From: Dimorphilus gyrociliatus
Lineage: Eukaryota; Animalia; Annelida
DNA: 64,000 nucleotides
NCBI GenBank assembly: GCA_904063045.1
Contig: CAJFCJ010000008.1
Span: forward strand, 186,001-250,000
Reading direction: 5' to 3'
Part shown: positions 2,983 through 14,222 of the stretch, piece by piece
Layout: each line of letters begins with the position of its first letter
Position numbering within the stretch: position 1 is the stretch's first letter
Notes under the pieces: generated by a model
The model's input: only the letters and a program-made list of their open reading frames with translations
Told to the model about the DNA's origin: nothing
The model's database searches: none
Made by a program: the position numbers and the translations under genes

Positions 2983-4924
2983 ATGATTTATAAATTATTA
3001 ACCTGTTCCTACATTATATATACACTGTATATAACCCCAATTAATGGTGGATGTCCACTTAAAAAAGATTGCAATTGCCTAAAAATTGAAAAATTCTACG
3101 AATCGATCGACTGCTCCAAAAAAGGTCTTGTAACTGTACCGGAAACGACAGAAACGAAGATAACTGTTGAAAAATTTTCATTATTAAATAATAAATTAAA
3201 AACTATACCGAAAAATTACTTTGAAAGTTTTTCACAAATTAAATCATTGGATTTAGATGAAAATGAATTTTCGGCTATTCCAGAAGCAATTAAAGTTCTA
3301 AATGTTACAAAGACTATTTGGATTCAAAGCAATAAAAAGTAAGTATTTAATTTCTCCTATTCCTTTTATAATATTTTCAATTGAAAGATAAATTTTCTTA
3401 TAAATTTTACGTATTAGGTTGAAAAAATTGACGAAAGGTTCATTTACCGGTTTAATAAGCTTAGAAGAAATATTCTTATCGAAAAACAAAATAGCAACTA
3501 TTGAAAGGGGAACTTTCGACGGTTTAATGAAACTCGAGACGCTTACATTGGAAAAGAATGCAATTGTTTCGATAGGAAACGGTTTATTTGAAGGTGTTGA
3601 AAATTCACTCAAGTACCTGGATTTGAGCTACAATAACATAAGTAAAATAGACGACGACGCCTTCTTAAATCTTACAAGAGTAGATACGTTGTTTTTAGAA
3701 AAGAATAAAATAAAACGTATTACAAGGGAACAAATGCATTCGTTAATTAGTATAGAACACATAAATCTGTCCGATAATTTAATTGAAACAATTGATGAGG
3801 ATGCTTTTAAATCGTGGACTAAACTTATATACATCTCTCTATGGAATAATAAGCTGGCATCAGTTTCGCCTAGTTTATTCTCTACTATTGCCCCTAGTTT
3901 GGACTTTATAAGTTTGGGATCGAATAAGAATATTTCACTTGACAAAGATTTCCTTAAAAATTATGTTCGACTAGAAACACTGGACTTGAGCTATACAAAA
4001 ACTACCAGTTTACCTACTATAACTCATTTGAAGTTCTTAAAGCAAGTCTTCATTATTGGTACAAAGATAAAGACGATTTACGAATGTGAATTTGAGGGTT
4101 TAAATCTGGACAAAATTGACTTATTTTGGGATTATACTCCCGTTAATTGCACTTGTGATTTAAATTGGATGAAAAAGCTATATACTCCTGAAAAACTGAA
4201 AAATTCCAAATTACATTTAGAATCTCCAGTTTGTAGGTATCCGAAAAACTTGAAGAAAAGCCAATTAGTTTATGCAGACCTCTGTCCAAGGGGTAGCTCA
4301 AAGAAATGGTGTAATTATTCAAAACCTATTCCAAGTGGTGGTAAATCATCAAAATCGGTTATATCTATAACAAGAGTTGTTGAAATGTCAAGTTCTCTTA
4401 CTATAATATGGGAAATAAATGAAGATATACCAATTAAAAGCTTTTTCATAACCTCAAAAGGTAAAAATGGAAACAGTTATCACTTAACAAAACATCTTCC
4501 GCTTTCGGACAGAGAGTATAAATTTTCGAAATTGAAAGCTCACAAATACTACGTGGTTTGCGTTGTAGCAATTGATTCAATGAATGCAGAAATATCAAGA
4601 TCCTGCGAAGATACAGAAACAAGTGATACAGTCGTCAAGAAATTAAGTCATAACGAAATAGGAGCAATTGTTGCCGGGATACTAGGATTTTTGATAGCCG
4701 CACTTTGTATCGGTATACTTGTGTATATGAATAGGAGAATTTTGCATAAAATGTTTATAAAGACAAATGATACACAAGGTATTGATAACATAGTTTACGA
4801 TGGTCAAAGAGATTCCGTTCACATCGGCAATGGAGTAGATCAACCAGCTTCCAGAGAGGCTAATAACCAGCATGAGACAAATCGAGGTAATATGTGGAAT
4901 TATGGACATTTGAATGAAACTTGA
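2983..4924 (+). CDS. LRR + FN3 single-pass transmembrane protein (FLRT/ELFN-like architecture), about 620 aa
   Basis: Exons 2983-3338 and 3418-4924, with a 79-nt phase-2 GT-AG intron. The protein has a signal peptide, LRRNT (CP..CNC..IDCS), about a dozen LRRs, LRRCT (NCTCDLNW..C), FN3 (LTIIWE..YVVCVVA), TM (IGAIVAGILGFLIAALCIGILVYM) and a cytoplasmic tail. Confidence 0.9.
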
Positions 4925-5273: not shown

Positions 5274-8200
5274 TTAACCAATTAACCAATATGTAATCAT
5301 TTTATTTTTACCCTAATAAATATAATTATTAATATACGGAAGTTGTAAGAAAAAACCATGTTTAATAGCTTTCTACGTTAGTGTATTATACCTTTACTTC
5401 AATTTCTCCTCTACATTCTAATTGGAATTCATTAAACATATCCAATATTTCGGCAGTATGGGAACTTAAGTGAACCTTTAAAGCTGGAAATAAGATTTAT
5501 TCTATTGTAATAGAATGCTCGGAATAGCTTGAATACTTACGACATCCTGTTGATTCCATTCTAGACGCTGTATTTACAGTGTCTCCAAATAGACAATATC
5601 TAGGCATCTTTAAACCTACAACACCTGTTACGCAAGGACCAGTGTGAACGCCAATTCTTAATTTTAGCTGTTCGTCAGGTCTGTGTTGTATTTTAAAAGA
5701 TTTAACCTTTTCCAATAGCTGCAATGACATATTTGCAATCTCTTTAGCATGATTTAGACCGTTTCTAATGGGTAGACCAGAAGCAACCATATAAGCATCG
5801 CCGATTGTTTCGACTTTATAAACGTCAAATTCAGATATAATTTCATCAAACATTGTATACAAATCATTTAATAGTTTAACAATTTGAATTGGTGTACTGT
5901 TAGCGGAAATCATTGTAAATCCAACAATATCGCTAAAGTATATAGTAACGCTTGAAAATGATTCTGGAGTAACTGTCTTACCAGCTTTTAGTTGGTCAAC
6001 AATTGTTCTGTAATAAAGAAAAGAAACACCTAGGTATAAAACCCCGGTTAATTATCGAAAGTAATTAATTAAATACTTTGGTAAAATCTGTAAAAGTAAA
6101 TCGTCTGTTTTTCGTTTTTCCTCTCCTAATTGTTTCGTTCTTTCTTCAACAATGGTTTCTAAATTATTTGCGTATTGCTGCATTCTTTTCAATAAATCAT
6201 CCATTATATTTATTTCTTTTAATCTGGATATAATTGGAGAGGGGAGGGGGGAAGGGAAAGGCTAAATATAACACCCTATATTAAAGTAGATTTTCTTTTC
6301 CTACCCTGTTAATTTTCTTATTAGTTGTTTTAATTCAATAAAAGTTGGCCTATCATTAGGATCTTCTTCCCAGCATTTACTGGTAATTTCAATAGCAGTC
6401 CTGTTACCCGGATCCAAAGGTATCAAAGGTCTTGTTACTGGCTTACAACCCTCAATGATCTTTTTAATAATATCTATATTAAGGGGGAAATTCAATTAGA
6501 AGATACCTTAAAAAGAAAGCTAAACTGATTGAAGGTGAAAATATAATGAGACCTTCTACAGATTGCGTATCTCTTTCAATAGAATACGGATAGCTTCGTA
6601 GTACTATTTCTTGAACGATAATACCAAAACTAAAAACATCCCCTTTTTGTGAACACTCCATTGAAAATTTAGACTTAGATGTTCTTAATATTTCAGGTGC
6701 AGTCCACAAAAGAGATTCGTGAAATGCGTGTGTATTTTCTTTTTGTTTTTCTGTTAACTTCAAAAAAGATGGTAAACCAAAATGGCACAATTTTACAATA
6801 AATCTATCATCTATTAAACAATTGGATGATTTCAAATTTCCATGTACACCAATAACGGAAGAGTGAATGAACTGCATTCCCTTAACTATATCATTAATAA
6901 TAGAATATTTAAAGGGCCAATCCAAATCGAAATTATCATCTTCTAAAAGATCTTGAAGACTTCCTTTCTTACAGTATTCATGTAAAAGGGCAGACTTTGT
7001 TGGTGGTTCTAAAATTGAACCATAAAATTTTAATACATTATTATGGCTTATCAAACGCCTCTGTTTAACTTCAATTCTTATTTTACGGGTGATATTCAAT
7101 TTTTTATCAGATGAGAAATACTTTAAAGCAACAATTGCTTCCTTATATTTTGCGGTTTCGATAAATGCCTGACCGGATAAATAACTTCTACTCGACTTTG
7201 TCGATTTCATGTCAACCGTTGGATCGTTCTATGGAAACATCAATATTTATGAAAGGAGAAAATTAACTATAAATAAAACAAACTTCAACAATCCTTGATC
7301 TTATTGAGCAGCTTCTAGCTAAGGTTGTTTGAACTGTTATTTCGTCTGAAGATATTATCCATGAATTGTCGGATATTTCGGACTCTAATTTCATCTTTCT
7401 GTAATCACAAATTGATGAGATCGTAATGATTATTTGCAGACGAAATTTAGGCAATTAGATGATAAAAGATAAATATTGATTACCTGTAAACGATAAAACC
7501 TGCGGCTAAAGATAGAATTAGCAAACAAGCAGTTGCAATCAAAGCAATAGTTGAAGTACTTAAGGGTTCTTCATGTTAATTTAACATTTAAAGAAAAAAG
7601 TTCTTATTATTATCATCTCAATGCATTCAAAGGAAAATGTACCTGATTTGATACAAGCAAGAGCGTTACCTTCGTAGCCACATATCGGTTCGTTTAAAGG
7701 CGGCTTTGTTCTACCGCCTGTCCAAAAGATTTTTTTACCTAAAACGGGTTCGAACTTGAGCGAGAATCCGTGATAGTATCCGAAAACCTATATTATAAAA
7801 AAACGCCAATTAGATGAAGAGAATTTTCAGATTCAATAACTTTAAAGAATTAAATAACAATGAAATCTTTTTTTTTGCTATCGCCTAAGTGCATCACTAC
7901 TTCTGTAAAGCCTTTTACTAAAGAATTCAAAGAGACAGTTCTATTTTTGCTTTTAGAATACCTCGAATTTTCCTGTTACGGGATTCATATCCATTATTTC
8001 ATAAGTTGCTTCCCTATCTGCTATTTCATTCATATACACCTTTCCAGTAATTCCATTAAACGTCCTATTCTCAAATAATTTAATAAATTGTTTTGCATTC
8101 CTTGGATCTAATTTCTTTTGTATACTTTCTTTCAAGGCTTCTCCATATAAAATAATAGACTCGTAAAATGCTCCAATAAAAAAGTTGACCTGTTTATAAT

Positions 8201-9352
8201 TTCACACAAATGACTACTTATTAAGCCTATCTAGCAGTTATGTAACTTACTCCTCCAACGTTATATGTATAATTAAAGTCTTTTAGTGTTCTTTCTTTAA
8301 TAATTTTGGAAAATTCAGTAAACTTTTCACTCTCTTCTAATTGCAATCGTACTCTTATCACAGCTTCACTCGCTTTTCGAACTTTATCATCGTCTTTCAA
8401 ACCTCTTTTCCAGTCGAAATATCCCCAATAATAGTCCTTGAATAATTCAACGTCCATTAAAACAAATTCCCCACTTTCAATGTATCCTAGATCGTATGCA
8501 GCAATGAGCAATTTTCTATTAATATCTCCATTGGCCATAAAGATAAAGACTATCAAATAAAACAAACTATATTTATATTTTCTTAACAATAAAAAGAAAT
8601 AGGAAAGATTTGTTATACTTCGTGATCTTTCACTAGCATCCTTTAAGAGTTTCTCGTATTTTCCATGATCATCTTGATAATGTCTACTATCAAAATCTTC
8701 CGTATAAGGATACACTTTCATACGTCGTAGGCCATCATTTAAAGTATCTGACATTTCAGTGTAAAATTCATTGCTAACGTCTGTAAAAATAGTTATCGAT
8801 GACCAGTTGAAATATTTAAAAATAGAGCCAAAAACTCTTCTCAAAGCGCATTGACAGTAAGCTAATCTGACTAAAGTAGGATAGTTTTCTTTGTAGCTAA
8901 ATCTGCCGGCGGCACCTTCACCAGTAATAATTGGCAGGTTCCAATTTGCCGCCATAAAAGCTACGGCATCTAAAGCTCCTGAGCATCCTGGACCAAATAT
9001 TGCAGACACGTTCTCTTTATAATATAGCTCGGCCGAAATAGCTAATAAACAATTCTTTTATAATTCCTATTTGTTTGATTTACGTTTAATATTACTCTTT
9101 GAGTTTACCTGGGGTTTTCTTCTGATCGCAATCAGGGCCGTATTGACGTTCAATAGAGGTTATGTAATAGCCAGAACCGTTGAGAATTTCTTCATTCACT
9201 CTTTCGATTCCCAGCCTAATAGCAGAGCCTGACTTTTTCCAGTCGAATGGTGCCCCATGATCTCTAATCATAATAACACCAACTTTAATCTCTTCCAGAT
9301 TATCAACGGTAGAAGAAAAGCATAAAAAATAAAAAGCAAATAGAATTCTCAT
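5274..9352 (-). CDS. Receptor (membrane) guanylyl cyclase, natriuretic-peptide-receptor-like, about 1042 aa
   Basis: 13 phase-consistent exons: 9352-9109, 9041-8619, 8549-8251, 8189-7962, 7787-7643, 7568-7484, 7398-7284, 7228-6553, 6473-6305, 6223-6077, 6007-5541, 5483-5392, 5312-5274 (3129 nt). Domains: signal peptide, ANF-receptor domain (IFGPGC), juxtamembrane Cys pair, TM, kinase-homology domain (HGNLKSSNC), dimerisation helix, and cyclase with the GTP-specifying VETIGDAYM and [18 protein letters not shown] motifs. Confidence 0.93.
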
Positions 9353-10202
9353 TCTTTCCTTCAATTACTAATATCCAACATTAATAGACAGAACTTGGTG
9401 ACGCTTTACAAAGTTTCCACGCATGCTCTGTAAACGTCATTAAAAGCGAAACATGACCTCTACACGTATTACTTTAATCAAAAACCTAACTGTCTTCCTC
9501 TTGAATGACCTTGGAAAATATATATAATGTCATAACAAGAACCCTGTTCTACGTTAATTATATGCAATTATATTTGTATAATTAATTGTATAGTATTAAC
9601 TAACATATATCCCTACATTCATATACAGTATATATATATATATAAGTTACGAACAAGGTACAGCCGGATTCTCGCCTTTGTCAAGATCAAAGTGAAACGA
9701 AAAGTGTAAGGATATTCATATATATATATATATATACATAGTATGTTGTTTGTAATAAATCTTTATCTATTAACGCTATCACTATTATTAATAACATTAT
9801 TATTGTTAGATTTAGCTGAAAGGTATATTCTAGATCCAAGTAGAATAATTATATAAATTTTAATAATATTATTAAGTTAATTAAAATATAACGTATCGCT
9901 AATTAGACTGTTGCTGCGTTATTTTCAAATGTATATGTCTACAAAGTTATATTTTATACAAAAAAAAGTATTACATTCTGGAGATTGTCTCTTTTTTAAA
10001 GGTAAAAAGATGGGATAGAGAGAAGGAAAAGTTTACAACGAAAGTCATCAAAGAAGTCCTAAAATATCTAAAATATATAAAGTCAATAATGAATGAATGT
10101 TTTACGGTATTTGAAAAATGTATTCTTATTAATTGGGGGGGAAGACGCCTTATTATGTATATAGTCCATATTTGTCACATCTTCTGTTTGTCTCCTTACA
10201 AG

Positions 10203-11190
10203 TTAGTCACGTATGTAATCTTTGATGGTAGATGGCGCTAGAAGATTCTTAAGAGCCATATACCAGCACGATTGATGTCCCATTGTTTTTAGCCAAGCCG
10301 GCGCCATGATACTATTTACTTTTACAGCTCCATAAGCAGAAAATCGTTGTACGCTGTTAAAGAATTGATAATTGTTTCTATTCACATGACCCATTAGACC
10401 ACCCTCTATAGTATCCGTGGTACTAAATTCAACATTAAGATGCATACTTGAAATTCCGTGTACTCCTCTTGTTACAGACATAGTAGGAAAATCTTTGGTA
10501 ACTACATTAACGTCTACACGACTATTTGTCATTTTATATGTAAAATCTGCCACACGCAATTCTTTGGTCCAAGATGACAGCCACTCTATCTCTTTATCAC
10601 CAAATCGGATCCCTTTCAAACTAATAGTTAAATTTTTATCCAATTTTGCTATAATAATTTCGTGCATATAATAATCATCTTTTAATCTTCCAAAAACAGT
10701 TATCCCTGGATCACTTTTACTAGCGATAACTATCAATTGGCCTGATTTACCAGTAACATCATAGCAAATAGATTCTGTTGAATTTTTCTTTGAATCGAAA
10801 ACGACTTGAAAAAAATGAGGATCACCCATAATGCTATTATCAATTCCGTGTACTTCAATAGAATTCGACTTAATTTCACCGTTGAAAATAGTCATACAGA
10901 GGAGATGTATTGCCGAAAGTAGACCAACGGACGCCGCTGGTTTCAAGCTGATCCTAAAAAATCCTGACTTGAAGCCAGTAAAAATGAATGGCGATATTTC
11001 CATTAGATTCGGATCTGCTCCAACTACTCTGTTATAATTTTTTCAGTTTAGAACTATGTGTCTACACCTGTAGTTTCTGTATATTACTCTCTTACTTGCA
11101 GCTGGTTACACCTTGAAATCCCATGCCAAGTTGATTTTGTCCCCCAAGTGCAACGTTTAGTGGACTTGGACTGAGAACTATACTTGCCAT
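10203..11190 (-). CDS. Small protein: about 100-aa N-terminal domain + inter-alpha-trypsin inhibitor heavy chain C-terminal-like domain (copy A, about 306 aa)
   Basis: Exons 11190-11096 (MASIVLSPSPL..TSC) and 11028-10203, with a 67-nt phase-2 intron. Motifs GDPHF, ICYDV, GITVFG, GGLMGH and CWYM..KDYI match the ITIH propeptide pattern DPHF..LCF..GLTVNG..HGLLGQ..CWFV..TDYI. Confidence 0.8.
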
Positions 11191-11746
11191 ATCTACTCGT
11201 CCCGACTCACCTTACGTTACTGATTTTAATCTGTTCGCCTCTGATATTTATATCATTCATCTTAAAAGTACTCACTCGTTTTAGTCGTAGATTAAAAAAA
11301 GAGAAAAAATGGGACACGTTTAAATTTTAAATAAAAAATTGATAATAGGATTTTCAATTATTATTGGAAACTTTTTACTTCAATCAATTCTGTATGATCT
11401 TTTACAAAACGTGATTGTTTCTTTATCATTTCGCTCTTCAACTCGACTATTCACCTTAAATGACTTTGCCATCTGCTAGAAGCTATTAAAATTTCTTTTT
11501 CATCTATTCCATTGATCCCTTATGAATTTTCATAAGATATCCTTCTATCATTGGCGTGATATATATTTTAGATATATATCGGAAATTTTGGCTGTTAATT
11601 TTGATAAAACGACGTAATTACATGTTTTAATTATAAAAGAAAAAAAATAGATTAATCGTCATTTTTCTAGATCAATAAAGTAAATAAGCAGTTTACAAAA
11701 TGAGTAGTGTTAGTTTTCCAGAGTAAACTCATCCAGCAAAAAACAG

Positions 11747-11754
11747 TATATAAA
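11747..11754 (+). promoter_or_regulatory. TATA box candidate for ITIH-C-like copy B
   Basis: TATATAAA 86 nt upstream of the ATG at 11833; the motif is common in AT-rich DNA. Confidence 0.4.
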
Positions 11755-11832
11755 GGCTGAGTGAACTTTTTTTAAAGAAAAGAGAAACACTTCTTTCTTC
11801 GTAAGTAAGTAAAAAATATAAGACGCTTTCGA

Positions 11833-12878
11833 ATGAACGCTATAATATCACCAACACCGGTTCTCTTTATTCCTGATAAGAATTCGGTTGGTAAAATATT
11901 CTATCATAAACCAGAAGGAGACATTTGCCGGTTAGTTACACTTTAAATTAAAAATATAAATTCTTTAGCTTAGTCTGTTCTTTTTGTGCATAACGACAAT
12001 AATGGTAATATACCCTCATTAGATTAAAAATATCCAAGTTGAACGTTCTAAATGCTCATCATCTGCAGACTAATGGTGATAAAGGACAGTATAGTTTGAC
12101 TGTGGATCCTTCCGTACATATTACTTCTGGTTTATTTTTGGCTACGGTGTTTCTTAATTGTATTTCAAAAGAAACGCTTAAAACTTATACTTCAAATACT
12201 GTAAACGTTTTCGCTGGCGAACCTGAAAATCAAATTGGAACTCTTAATGACGACCCACATTTTCTTCAATCTGTTAGAGATAGCAATACGAAAAATTTTG
12301 TCAGGATTTGTTATGATGTTGTTGGTGAATCTAATCAATATATATTTATCGCTGGAAATCGGCATTTGAATATATCTATTTATGGCGTACTGAGAGATGA
12401 TTACTACATGAGTAGTGTCATTATAAAAACATCTGCTGGAGAAGTAGTGATTACTGTTGATGGAGTTATAGTAAACAATCGATTAATTGAATTGGATTCA
12501 TTGGATCCATTTAATATTGATACTCACGATTTTCATATATCAGAATCAGAAAAAGGTTTGGCCATAAAGCATCATCACGCTAATTTTCCAACAATTTACA
12601 TCTATCATCAAACTAATGATGTATCAAGTAGATTTTTGAACTTTGAACTATCATCACTTTATCAAATTGATACTGGCGTAATGGGAACTATTGAACAAAA
12701 AATGTTTGAATTCTATGAAAGAGTACAAGAAAATTCATTCGCCGGAGCCGTAAAAGTAGATCATTTTCTTAATAGAGCATGGTTAGCTAAACGAGGACGA
12801 AATGAATGTTGGCTAGTAGATACCAATGATTTATTAAGACCACTTACAATAAATAACTTTATTAAAAGTACTGTATAA
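11833..12878 (+). CDS. Small protein: N-terminal domain + ITIH C-terminal-like domain (copy B, about 317 aa), divergent paralogue of copy A
   Basis: Exons 11833-11930 (MNAIISPTPV..DIC) and 12023-12878, with a 92-nt phase-2 intron at the same position after Cys as in copy A. Motifs DDPHF, ICYDVVG, DDYYM, GVMG, GAVKV and CWLV are shared with copy A. Confidence 0.8.
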
Positions 12879-13151
12879 GTGTATAAGTTAATGAAAATTT
12901 TTATATCTTTCTTATTTAAAGTATACATTTTTTCATTATTGAAAATACAATAATCTTTACTTCGCTAAATTGAGAGAGTTTATTAGAATGTATAGTTACT
13001 ATTACTATTCACAAAAAGTAGATCAAGTTTAACAACAGCATAATACTATGAAGAGGACAACATACATCTAGACAATCTTGAGTAATTAGTATAAATGCAA
13101 ACTTATATACTGACAATAACAATGAAGTGTAAATAGAGAACTGATTTTGAC

Positions 13152-14222
13152 TTAATATTTTGCCACTGAAGTATGGTTACTGCTACTACTAGGATTACTA
13201 TGGCAATTAATATCTTCTGTAGAATTATCAGGCTTTCTCAATGCAAACAATGTTGTAATTCTCTTTCTAAAATTTGAATTGAAATAGGCAAAAAGGAAAA
13301 AGTTTGCCGATGAATTGATTAAAGTTATATTATCAGTTAAAAGGGCGAAATACATAAATGGATGTCCGCATAATATCGATTTCTTAAAATATAATCCAGA
13401 TATTATTAATCTAAAAATTTCAAACGAAAAGCAGATTACGAATAGTATATTAACAGACATCAGAGTTCTTGTTAAATATCTAGCTTTAGAGGTTAAAACG
13501 GAATTATCGGTTGAGACTTTCGTATTAAGACTTTTTAGAATGTAGATCGTGAGTAACAATGTTGCTACGAAAGGAATGATTATAACTACAATGTTATGTA
13601 ATATTATTCTGTATGAAATGCCATAAATTTCGTTTTTTTTCAAATCTGTTGGACTATAGTGCCAACGTTGTGTTTTTTGATAAAAACGAGGTTCAAATTC
13701 AAAATTTCTCACAAAAGCAAATGCAAATGCAACTATATAGAATGTAACTACTATCATTTTAGCTTTTTGTGGAGTGAAAATTCTAGCAGAGGTTGGTTTG
13801 CATATAGCCAAATATCTGTCAATAGAGATAGCTACTATTAGCCAATTTGATGTTATTCTACCACTTGTTCCAACTGCATTCAAATATCGCATGCCATACG
13901 CAGGAATCTTTGAATAATTCCTTATCGTTTCTATACTGGAATAAATCAAGCAAGCCGGAAAAGATATTAAAATAAACTTTAAAACAAGTAGAAGTATATC
14001 AGAAAATTCCAAGGCCAAGACAAGTATACTACTTGTTGTCAAATTCCATCGTTTATTAGACATCGTAGCCCACACAAAAGCGGCCAAACTATTAAATATA
14101 GTGCCAAATGCACATAGAAAACTTCTTATACAGCCTCCAACGATAAAAAGATACCATTCACAAGTTGCTCCTGTGGAACTTGTTCCATTAGTATCTTTAA
14201 CAACTGCTGATGTTATGTTCAT
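13152..14222 (-). CDS. Class A peptide GPCR, FMRFamide-receptor-like group, 356 aa, intronless CDS
   Basis: Seven hydrophobic segments, N-terminal sequons (NIT, NGT), SNWLIVAISIDRYLAICKP and NSSANFFLF. A possible 5' UTR intron lies at 14341-14240. Confidence 0.92.
   Translation of the reverse strand: MNITSAVVKDTNGTSSTGATCEWYLFIVGGCIRSFLCAFGTIFNSLAAFVWATMSNKRWNLTTSSILVLALEFSDILLLVLKFILISFPACLIYSSIETIRNYSKIPAYGMRYLNAVGTSGRITSNWLIVAISIDRYLAICKPTSARIFTPQKAKMIVVTFYIVAFAFAFVRNFEFEPRFYQKTQRWHYSPTDLKKNEIYGISYRIILHNIVVIIIPFVATLLLTIYILKSLNTKVSTDNSVLTSKARYLTRTLMSVNILFVICFSFEIFRLIISGLYFKKSILCGHPFMYFALLTDNITLINSSANFFLFAYFNSNFRKRITTLFALRKPDNSTEDINCHSNPSSSSNHTSVAKY

Follow-up and report, generated by a model that had tools for sequence, protein, structure and literature searches.

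A divergent pair of leaderless genes in Dimorphilus gyrociliatus with an Ig-like domain, an Asp-Pro motif and a predicted ITIH-like sandwich

The gene pair and its transcripts

Contig CAJFCJ010000008.1 of assembly GCA_904063045.1, from the miniature annelid Dimorphilus gyrociliatus, carries at 10203-12878 of the 64,000-nucleotide stretch analysed here (the window; contig positions 186,001 to 250,000 of the forward strand, renumbered from 1) two genes, A and B, that point away from each other. The product of each has an immunoglobulin (Ig)-like domain of about 100 amino acids starting at Met1, then GDPHF (gene A) or DDPHF (gene B), and then a beta-sandwich of about 205 amino acids. A first-pass annotation made from the letters of the DNA had described divergent paralogues with ATGs 642 nucleotides apart and the same phase-2 intron, and both points are borne out. 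The long open reading frames (ORFs), one on the minus strand at 10203-11003 and one on the plus strand at 12039-12878, align without gaps over 209 amino acids at 33% identity (E 1e-40), and the ATGs, at 11190 (minus) and 11833 (plus), are 642 nucleotides apart. Both introns are of phase 2 and interrupt the genes at the same position, after a conserved Cys codon plus two bases, as is seen from spliced RNA contigs, from an intronless orthologous mRNA and from the deposited gene B protein. The placement of the motifs directly after the N-terminal domain is likewise confirmed by the sequence and by that protein. No third copy was found in the whole window by tblastn with both ORFs. Gene A encodes 306 amino acids, and the NCBI record calls a product of the same length over the span; gene B, 317 amino acids, is DgyrCDS6822, with the deposited protein P0001. 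The features of the pair, including its untranslated regions (UTRs), are these:

10138 to 10202, minus strand: 3' UTR of gene A, minimum extent (X1 and X2 RNA contigs end at 10138/10140)
10203 to 11028, minus strand: exon 2 of gene A, from the ORF listing, with spliced contigs joining 11028 to 11096; it holds the last base of a split Lys codon, 274 codons and the stop (10203-10205), and is collinear with P0002, the protein of the orthologous mRNA
10812 to 10826, minus strand: GDPHF motif of gene A, with the predicted scissile bond joining Asp (codon 10823-10821) to Pro (codon 10820-10818); residue 110 of P0001 aligns at 10823
11029 to 11095, minus strand: intron of gene A, 67 nucleotides, phase 2, GT..AG, spliced out in two RNA contigs, one from X1 and one from X2
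11096 to 11190, minus strand: coding exon 1 of gene A, Met1 to Cys31 plus two bases of codon 32
11191 to 11832, no strand: divergent intergenic region, 642 nucleotides, with both 5' UTRs, fully covered by the X2 contig
11245 to 11252, minus strand: putative TATA-like box, TATAAATA, suggested by its sequence
11614 to 11670, plus strand: unannotated intergenic intron, 57 nucleotides, GT..AG, with 11613 joined to 11671 in X2 contig 3
11747 to 11754, plus strand: putative TATA-like box, TATATAAA, likewise suggested by its sequence
11833 to 11930, plus strand: coding exon 1 of gene B, Met1 to Cys32 plus two bases of codon 33
11931 to 12022, plus strand: intron of gene B, 92 nucleotides, phase 2, GT..AG, with its joint present in X2 contig 3; at the junction the sequence of P0001 is GDIC-R-LKISK
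12023 to 12878, plus strand: exon 2 of gene B, stop at 12876-12878
12249 to 12263, plus strand: DDPHF motif of gene B, with Asp110-Pro111 as the predicted scissile bond and Asp instead of the usual Gly at -1

Contigs of two public RNA runs, X1 and X2, were aligned to window 10100-13000. A 999-nucleotide contig of X1, 99% identical, covers 11203-11096 and then 11028-10138 and is the spliced gene A mRNA; the same run also contains a 215-nucleotide fragment of gene B exon 2. From X2 comes a single unstranded contig of 2520 nucleotides that spans both genes and has three splice joints, namely the gene A intron (which reads CT..AC, so minus strand), the gene B intron (GT..AG) and the 57-nucleotide GT..AG intron at 11614-11670. 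Gene A and gene B are both transcribed, and have a 642-nucleotide divergent promoter region in common. The 57-nucleotide intron is on the plus strand and therefore gives gene B a distal non-coding first exon, and the two genes were merged in the unstranded X2 assembly because the 5' ends of their transcription units abut or overlap. Inside the gene B leader, at about 11700, is a short upstream ORF (MSSVSFPE). Run X1, a metatranscriptome with the label coral metagenome, belongs to a different study, and the presence there of spliced gene A mRNA 99% identical to the window means that a Dimorphilus-like worm lives in that sample.

Fold, family and leaderless start

The domains were compared with known families by sequence profile and by predicted structure. 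Scanning with Pfam models matched neither VIT nor vWA in the ORF of gene A or gene B, in agreement with the first-pass annotation, which had also put a complete ITIH C-terminal domain after the motif. The corresponding Pfam model, ITI_HC_C (PF06668), the search it had advised, gave no match at E<=1 in either ORF or in the orthologue P0002, and the VWD model (PF00094) matched neither A nor B nor any of the scanned relatives. Three of 71 relatives do have weak ITI_HC_C matches, the best with an E of 5e-4, and this is the sole Pfam family matched by more than one relative. Searches of PDB sequences by phmmer and by profile gave chance matches only, for instance to RNase PH and 14-3-3.

For structure, an AlphaFold2 (AF2) model of gene B was built on the alignment of the 71 relatives, with a predicted local distance difference test score (pLDDT) of 87 and a predicted template modelling score (pTM) of 0.69; single-sequence AF2 reached a pLDDT of 36. 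Residues 1-100 form a generic Ig-like sandwich, with Z of 8-9.5 in VIA-align to ICAM D1, PapD-like chaperones and MSP/ASH domains, and template modelling (TM) scores of 0.65-0.71 to bacterial Ig-like domains in the ESM Atlas. The expectation of a beta-rich domain of about 100 amino acids with two conserved Cys was accordingly sound, as a single Ig-like sandwich. A Calx-beta identity for this cargo domain was considered and rejected, as the Pfam model matches no scanned relative and the fold lists give generic Ig-like sandwiches, and for that reason the domain is called Ig-like here.

With residues 109-317 the VIA-align matches among solved structures are VWD domains, with Z of 11.8 to MUC5B, 11.5 to VWF, 11.1 to FCGBP D10 and 10.7 to the C-terminal part of MUC2 (10.2-11.8 overall, 138-150 residues aligned). 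The alignment to FCGBP D10 (8qci_B) begins at Pro111 of the model and residue 4081 of the chain, the residue next after the scissile Asp4080. Among predicted structures the closest is the C-terminal region of ITIH2 (TM 0.56, normalised to 317 residues; 207 residues aligned, root-mean-square deviation (rmsd) 3.3 A) and the second an ITIH3-like C-terminal region (TM 0.52, 205 aligned, rmsd 3.9 A), followed by clusters with Pfam ITI_HC_C and only after those by VWD proteins; an independent ESM model of the gene B protein gives the same ranking. The comparison with the ITIH fold is one of predicted models on both sides. Foldseek with the whole two-domain model against PDB gave generic tandem-Ig matches only, with TM below 0.3. 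By predicted structure, the C-terminal sandwich would have a VWD fold and be nearest to the ITIH C-terminal domain. The ITIH domain itself has VWD topology, with GDPH between its first two strands (PMC10880436), and the ranking obtained with gene B agrees with this. What was called a complete ITIH C-terminal domain is thus upheld by predicted structure and by the three weakly matching relatives, and is undetectable by Pfam in A and B. The modelling of the two halves that had been suggested was similarly divided in outcome, with an ITIH/VWD-type sandwich for the C-terminal half (Foldseek against PDB alone being generic) and a generic Ig-like domain for the N-terminal half.

To place the pair, a profile of A and B was searched exhaustively against 1.84 billion cluster representatives (clusters at 50% identity). 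It retrieved 135 clusters at E<=1e-3, 103 of them at E<=1e-10. All 19 named matches are D. gyrociliatus proteins, encoded on many contigs, and the remaining matches are from Logan contigs; the search did not arrive at any vertebrate ITIH, mucin or RGM. A word-index protein search returned the query alone or, with the family profile, two D. gyrociliatus proteins, an outcome that reflects the limit of the index and is no proof of absence. Two retrieved proteins were set aside: P0100 (2744 amino acids, 16 weak stretches) is a bacterial SprB-repeat protein with a spurious summed match, and P0074 (833 amino acids) is FLYWCH plus MULE transposase with a partial C-terminal domain at residues 679-744, probably a transposon adjoining or inside a family member and fused to it by gene calling. 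The proposal that the processing module has been uncoupled from the ITIH body therefore survives in that the DPHF motif and C-terminal domain occur with neither VIT nor vWA, and fails in that the pair does not stand alone but belongs to a family of at least 135 clusters, which also supplies the count of the architecture that had been called for.

Family members couple at least one Ig-like (Calx-beta-like) cargo domain, by way of a (G)DPHF motif, to the C-terminal sandwich of about 205 amino acids. Most of the family matches are 200-520 amino acids long with the domain at the C-terminus. In those with a signal-like N-terminus the motif is found around 125-150, 185-235 or 300-350, positions that equate to one, two and three cargo domains, and most full-length members look secreted in this respect. 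Many matches of 250-290 amino acids with the motif at 35-88 resemble ORFs of exon 2 only. In the 71-sequence alignment the near-invariant residues are D110, P111, H112, Q115, C129, Y130, D131, G134, D158, D159, Y161, W190, L238, G251, G254 and C295, with D, P and H of the motif each conserved in at least 90%. Over all matches, DPH is kept in 88 of 134; Phe comes next to His in 65, and 76 have Gln at +5 counted from Asp; the residue at -1 in the DPH matches is Gly in 65 (74%), Asp in six (including gene B) and Ala in two (including the orthologue of gene A). DgyrCDS8601, 4491, 4499 and 9723-9727 are true relatives (E 1e-30 to 1e-67).

The orthologue P0002, of 306 amino acids, is from a 1043-nucleotide intronless Logan contig (L001, run SRR31837527). 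It is 68% identical to gene A and collinear with it across the splice junction, and on this sequence comparison the contig is read as the orthologous mRNA of a related organism. Between gene A and the orthologue the ratio of nonsynonymous to synonymous substitution rates (dN/dS) is 0.17 for exon 2 and 0.15 for the C-terminal domain, at a dS of 1.4 that is close to saturation. Because of the spliced transcripts and the dN/dS of 0.17, gene A and gene B are taken as real, expressed and under purifying selection. In a maximum likelihood tree of the C-terminal domains gene A groups with P0002 (100/99) and gene B is their sister (99/90), so that the duplication giving A and B is older than the species split, and the clade of the three sits among mostly signal-bearing members. 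By the tree and profile matches, A and B are a distinct old leaderless branch of a large family known so far only from D. gyrociliatus and near relatives. The nearest signal-bearing relative of the clade, P0008, is intronless on genomic contigs of three runs (L003 6001-6948, L004 and L005), and with a phase-2 intron in A and B the presence of an intron therefore varies within the family.

Neither gene A nor gene B has a signal peptide by hydropathy, mRNA contigs or fold models. The maximum Kyte-Doolittle mean over 10 residues near the N-terminus is 1.25 for gene A, 1.22 for the orthologue and 1.96 for gene B; relatives were counted as signal-bearing from 2.2 upwards, and 47 matches qualify, reaching 3.8. 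Met1 of A ('MASIVLSPSPLNV') and of B ('MNAIISPTPVLFI') aligns with the start of the mature domain in signal-bearing relatives such as P0008 ('...LKITPDELYISPG'), and residues 1-100 sit inside the Ig-like fold in both the AF2 and the ESM model. In the genome sequence there is an in-frame TAA at -24 before the gene A ATG, and the X1 contig of gene A is collinear with the genome for 13 nucleotides upstream of that ATG. The orthologue contig has a 5' UTR of 25 nucleotides, collinear with the genome upstream and containing a TGA in frame at position -24. In gene B the upstream exon is joined to 11671, which belongs to the exon of the ATG and precedes the ATG by 162 nucleotides; this upstream exon cannot add a signal peptide because four in-frame stops lie between 11671 and 11832, ahead of the ATG. 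No upstream coding exon is present in the RNA contigs of either gene or in the orthologous mRNA. The claim of no signal peptide, with in-frame stops before both ATGs, stands on all these counts, and transcripts with upstream exons giving a secreted ITIH-like protein, which the first-pass annotation had named as the outcome that would overturn it, were not seen in the RNA contigs. As the leaderless state is common to A, B and the orthologue, in a clade nested in mostly signal-bearing members, the comparison of sequences dates it to before the duplication of gene A and gene B.

Asp-Pro cleavage weighed against alternatives

The explanation favoured here, with confidence somewhat above an even balance, is that A and B are a real, expressed and constrained leaderless branch of the family that is predicted probably to cleave itself at Asp-Pro. 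For all that A and B are only 33% identical, they and the orthologue retain D-P-H-F and the Gln at +5 that is specific to the family. Cleavage of FCGBP D10 depends on the Asp as well as on the His of GDPH (PMC10880436), and GDPH cleavage leaves a C-terminal Asp anhydride that is reactive with water, hydroxyls and amines (PMC8267560). For ITIH3, the latter paper cites work in which cleavage is autocatalytic, promoted by the low pH of the trans-Golgi and dependent on the propeptide, with an ester to the GalNAc of chondroitin sulfate as its outcome. The fragments of VWD and RGM proteins are disulfide-tethered, while the ITIH and sponge wreath domains have no Cys for this and are released (PMC11670116). 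By the tether-Cys criterion drawn from PMC11670116 and PMC8267560, A, B and P0002 have no Cys among the 15 residues that precede DPH, though 32 of 84 relatives do, and the A and B fragments would not be disulfide-tethered since there is no Cys in the strand before the motif.

On this explanation the sandwich would fold first and the side chain of Asp101 (A) or Asp110 (B) would then attack its own Asp-Pro bond, with help from the motif His. The products would be an Ig-like fragment of 12 kDa with a reactive C-terminal Asp anhydride and a sandwich of 24 kDa starting at Pro (12.1 and 23.9 kDa as predicted for gene B), which would be free to part, in the manner of the ‘release’ type of ITIH and the sponge wreath domain rather than the ‘tethered’ type of VWD and RGM. 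Reaction of the anhydride with water could then give plain cleavage, or its reaction with a partner's hydroxyl or amine could give covalent attachment. Covalent tagging, heteropairing and the cell compartment of A and B are speculative. That they are the first ITIH-type Asp-Pro autoprocessing proteins without entry into the endoplasmic reticulum (ER), tagging partners with a 12-kDa Ig-like domain, is a long shot; if true, they would be a self-contained, enzyme-free protein-tagging device, and the head-to-head pair might act together.

Several points weigh against self-cleavage by leaderless proteins. Cleavage in this family is a prediction from motif, conservation, fold and literature. The motif residues 102-109 have a pLDDT below 50 in the AF2 model, so the model does not capture the strained geometry of the hairpin that cleavage requires. 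The Gly at -1 is replaced by Asp in gene B and by Ala in the orthologue of gene A, keeping in mind that a cis Gly-Asp bond has been proposed as an aid to cleavage in FCGBP. The cleavage of ITIH3 and MUC2 is promoted by the acidic late secretory pathway (PMC8267560), and leaderless A and B would miss the acidic Golgi. There are also signs of another compartment. A, B and the orthologue have four conserved Cys in common, two in the N-terminal and two in the C-terminal domain (the C129/C295 positions), placed where structural disulfides typically lie, and C129/C295 presumably match a conserved VWD disulfide. The orthologue also keeps the two N-x-T sequons of gene A in the same places, a weak point since chance conservation is likely. 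The Cys and the sequons suit a secreted protein better than a cytosolic one, and the Cys tell against an existence in the cytosol alone. Going by these residues, A and B may still see an oxidising compartment; they could be in the cytosol, or extracellular after unconventional release.

An alternative that is possible but doubtful is that the Asp-Pro bond is cut as a step of folding or maturation, with the anhydride hydrolysed, the fragments remaining non-covalently paired and no tagging, so that A and B would be small Ig-plus-VWD binding or matrix proteins. This is how FCGBP behaves, whose GDPH sites are all cleaved with the anhydride taking water and no cross-linked partner (PMC8267560), and cleavage stabilises the VWD domain (PMC10880436); the VWD fold of the C-terminal domain, with Z of 10.2-11.8, is in keeping with it. 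However, the Cys before the motif that tethers the fragments of VWD and RGM proteins (PMC11670116) is missing from A and B, and their nearest predicted structures are ITIH C-terminal domains, which are released.

It is unlikely that no cleavage takes place at all, with the motif a retained structural hairpin in intact two-domain cytosolic binding proteins. The poorly modelled motif loop would suit this, as would the residues at -1, Asp in gene B and Ala in the gene A orthologue, which weaken the motif, and a neutral cytosolic pH less favourable to ITIH-type cleavage than that of the trans-Golgi (PMC8267560). DPH is absent from 46 of 134 matches, and although many of these are post-motif fragments, some are apparently full-length, so the fold tolerates loss of the motif. 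Yet no Gly precedes the DPHF at which ITIH1 and ITIH2 are cleaved, and the retention of D-P-H-F and the +5 Gln in A, B and the orthologue, at 33% identity between A and B, also speaks against a motif without a role in cleavage.

Far less probable is that A and B are ordinary secreted members whose signal-peptide exon was missed both in the deposited annotation and in the first-pass one. Most full-length relatives have a signal-like N-terminus, the four Cys and the sequons are conserved, and gene B does have an unannotated upstream exon. But that exon joins 162 nucleotides before the ATG with four in-frame stops between, the contigs of gene A and the orthologue are genome-collinear for 13 and 25 nucleotides upstream of the ATG, an in-frame stop stands at -24 in the orthologue contig and in the gene A genome sequence, and the leaderless start is common to all three genes and predates the duplication. 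That they are decaying copies, pseudogenes in the making after loss of a signal peptide that would normally disable a member of a secreted family, can be dismissed as extremely improbable in view of the intact ORFs in both paralogues and the orthologue, the spliced transcripts from two studies, the dN/dS of 0.17 and the retention of every motif residue and Cys at 33% paralogue identity.

Neighbouring genes and known systems

Other genes in the window near the pair are the following.

2983 to 4924, plus strand: leucine-rich repeat (LRR) protein, 620 amino acids, from the NCBI record
5386 to 9271, minus strand: receptor guanylate cyclase, 1004 amino acids, with ANF_receptor, Pkinase and Guanylate_cyc domains, from the NCBI record

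An intronless ORF of 356 amino acids at 13152-14222 on the minus strand matches the rhodopsin family of G-protein-coupled receptors (7tm_1, E 1.6e-17; also Srx/Srw-like). The NCBI record has no called gene at this place (locus L002, 11320-12390), and on the strength of the domain match it may be an unannotated receptor gene beside gene B. A homeodomain gene follows about 2.8 kb downstream of gene B. The guanylate cyclase, LRR and homeodomain genes have no obvious functional link to the pair.

ITIH's C-terminal domain is the only well-studied module that turns spontaneous Asp-Pro cleavage into a covalent bond between protein and glycan, and how it arose and how portable it is are poorly understood. 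In an annelid, a family with the same fold and motif on small and varied cargo would show the module to be a portable cassette, for which the sponge aggregation factor would then be a parallel case. Expression, mutagenesis and crystallisation are far less demanding with proteins of 34-36 kDa such as A and B than with ITIH or the sponge protein MAFp3/p4, and A and B could supply the structures before and after cleavage that are still missing. With the leaderless branch comes the question of whether Asp-Pro chemistry is workable outside the acidic secretory pathway.

Of the systems with which A and B can be compared, the closest to hand are secreted mini-ITIH genes of the DgyrCDS8601 type in the same species, which have the two-Cys pattern of the N-terminal domain, the motif and the C-terminal domain in common with the pair. 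They look secreted, whereas A and B form their own clade, have no signal peptide and are arranged head to head. In ITIH, as in A and B, the DPHF motif starts a beta-sandwich of about 200 amino acids, and there is no tethering Cys before it, which leaves the domain releasable. A and B differ from ITIH in having neither the VIT/vWA body nor a signal peptide, with a single Ig-like cargo of about 100 amino acids instead, and in that the Pfam model matches neither protein and the profile search reached no vertebrate ITIH, the likeness being one of predicted structure.

The VWD/GDPH proteins FCGBP, MUC2, MUC5AC and RGM have the VWD fold in common with A and B, in which the Asp and His required in FCGBP are also present. 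In contrast to those proteins, A and B have no C8/TIL partners and no Cys before the motif, and so no disulfide tether; further, their sandwich is larger than VWD domains (about 205 amino acids, of which about 140 align) and is not matched by Pfam VWD. A more distant analogy is offered by a bacterial protein. NopE1 is a type III effector and acts outside the eukaryotic secretory pathway. Effectors of its type in Bradyrhizobium, with DUF1521, are self-cleaving at GD|PH and have no vWD domain, as listed in PMC8267560; with unrelated fold and origin, the likeness of NopE1 to A and B is one of analogy only.

No paper was found on DgyrCDS6821, DgyrCDS6822 or stand-alone proteins of the ITI_HC_C type. 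The first-pass annotation had allowed that its case would fall if the architecture were already a described family, and although no paper on these genes was found, an analogous architecture is in print for the sponge aggregation factor MAFp3/p4, reported in 2024 with a Calx-beta array, an Asp-Pro and a ‘wreath’ domain (PMC11670116). The wreath domain is a VWD-like sandwich that resembles the C-terminal domains of ITIH and RGM and is without the tether Cys, and the authors of that work suggest that cleavage and the binding of glycans could come about through it (PMC11670116). MAFp3/p4 and the annelid pair, compared by architecture only, are alike in having cargo of Ig type or Calx-beta, an Asp-Pro and a releasable VWD/ITIH-like sandwich. 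The secreted sponge precursor contains 29 Calx-beta domains and has a mass of about 430 kDa, while A and B are 34-36 kDa and leaderless. An architecture of cargo, Asp-Pro and VWD/ITIH-like domain is already published for a sponge, and the annelid pair is not a new kind of system; what is new is a minimal, leaderless and divergently paired branch of a lineage-specific family.

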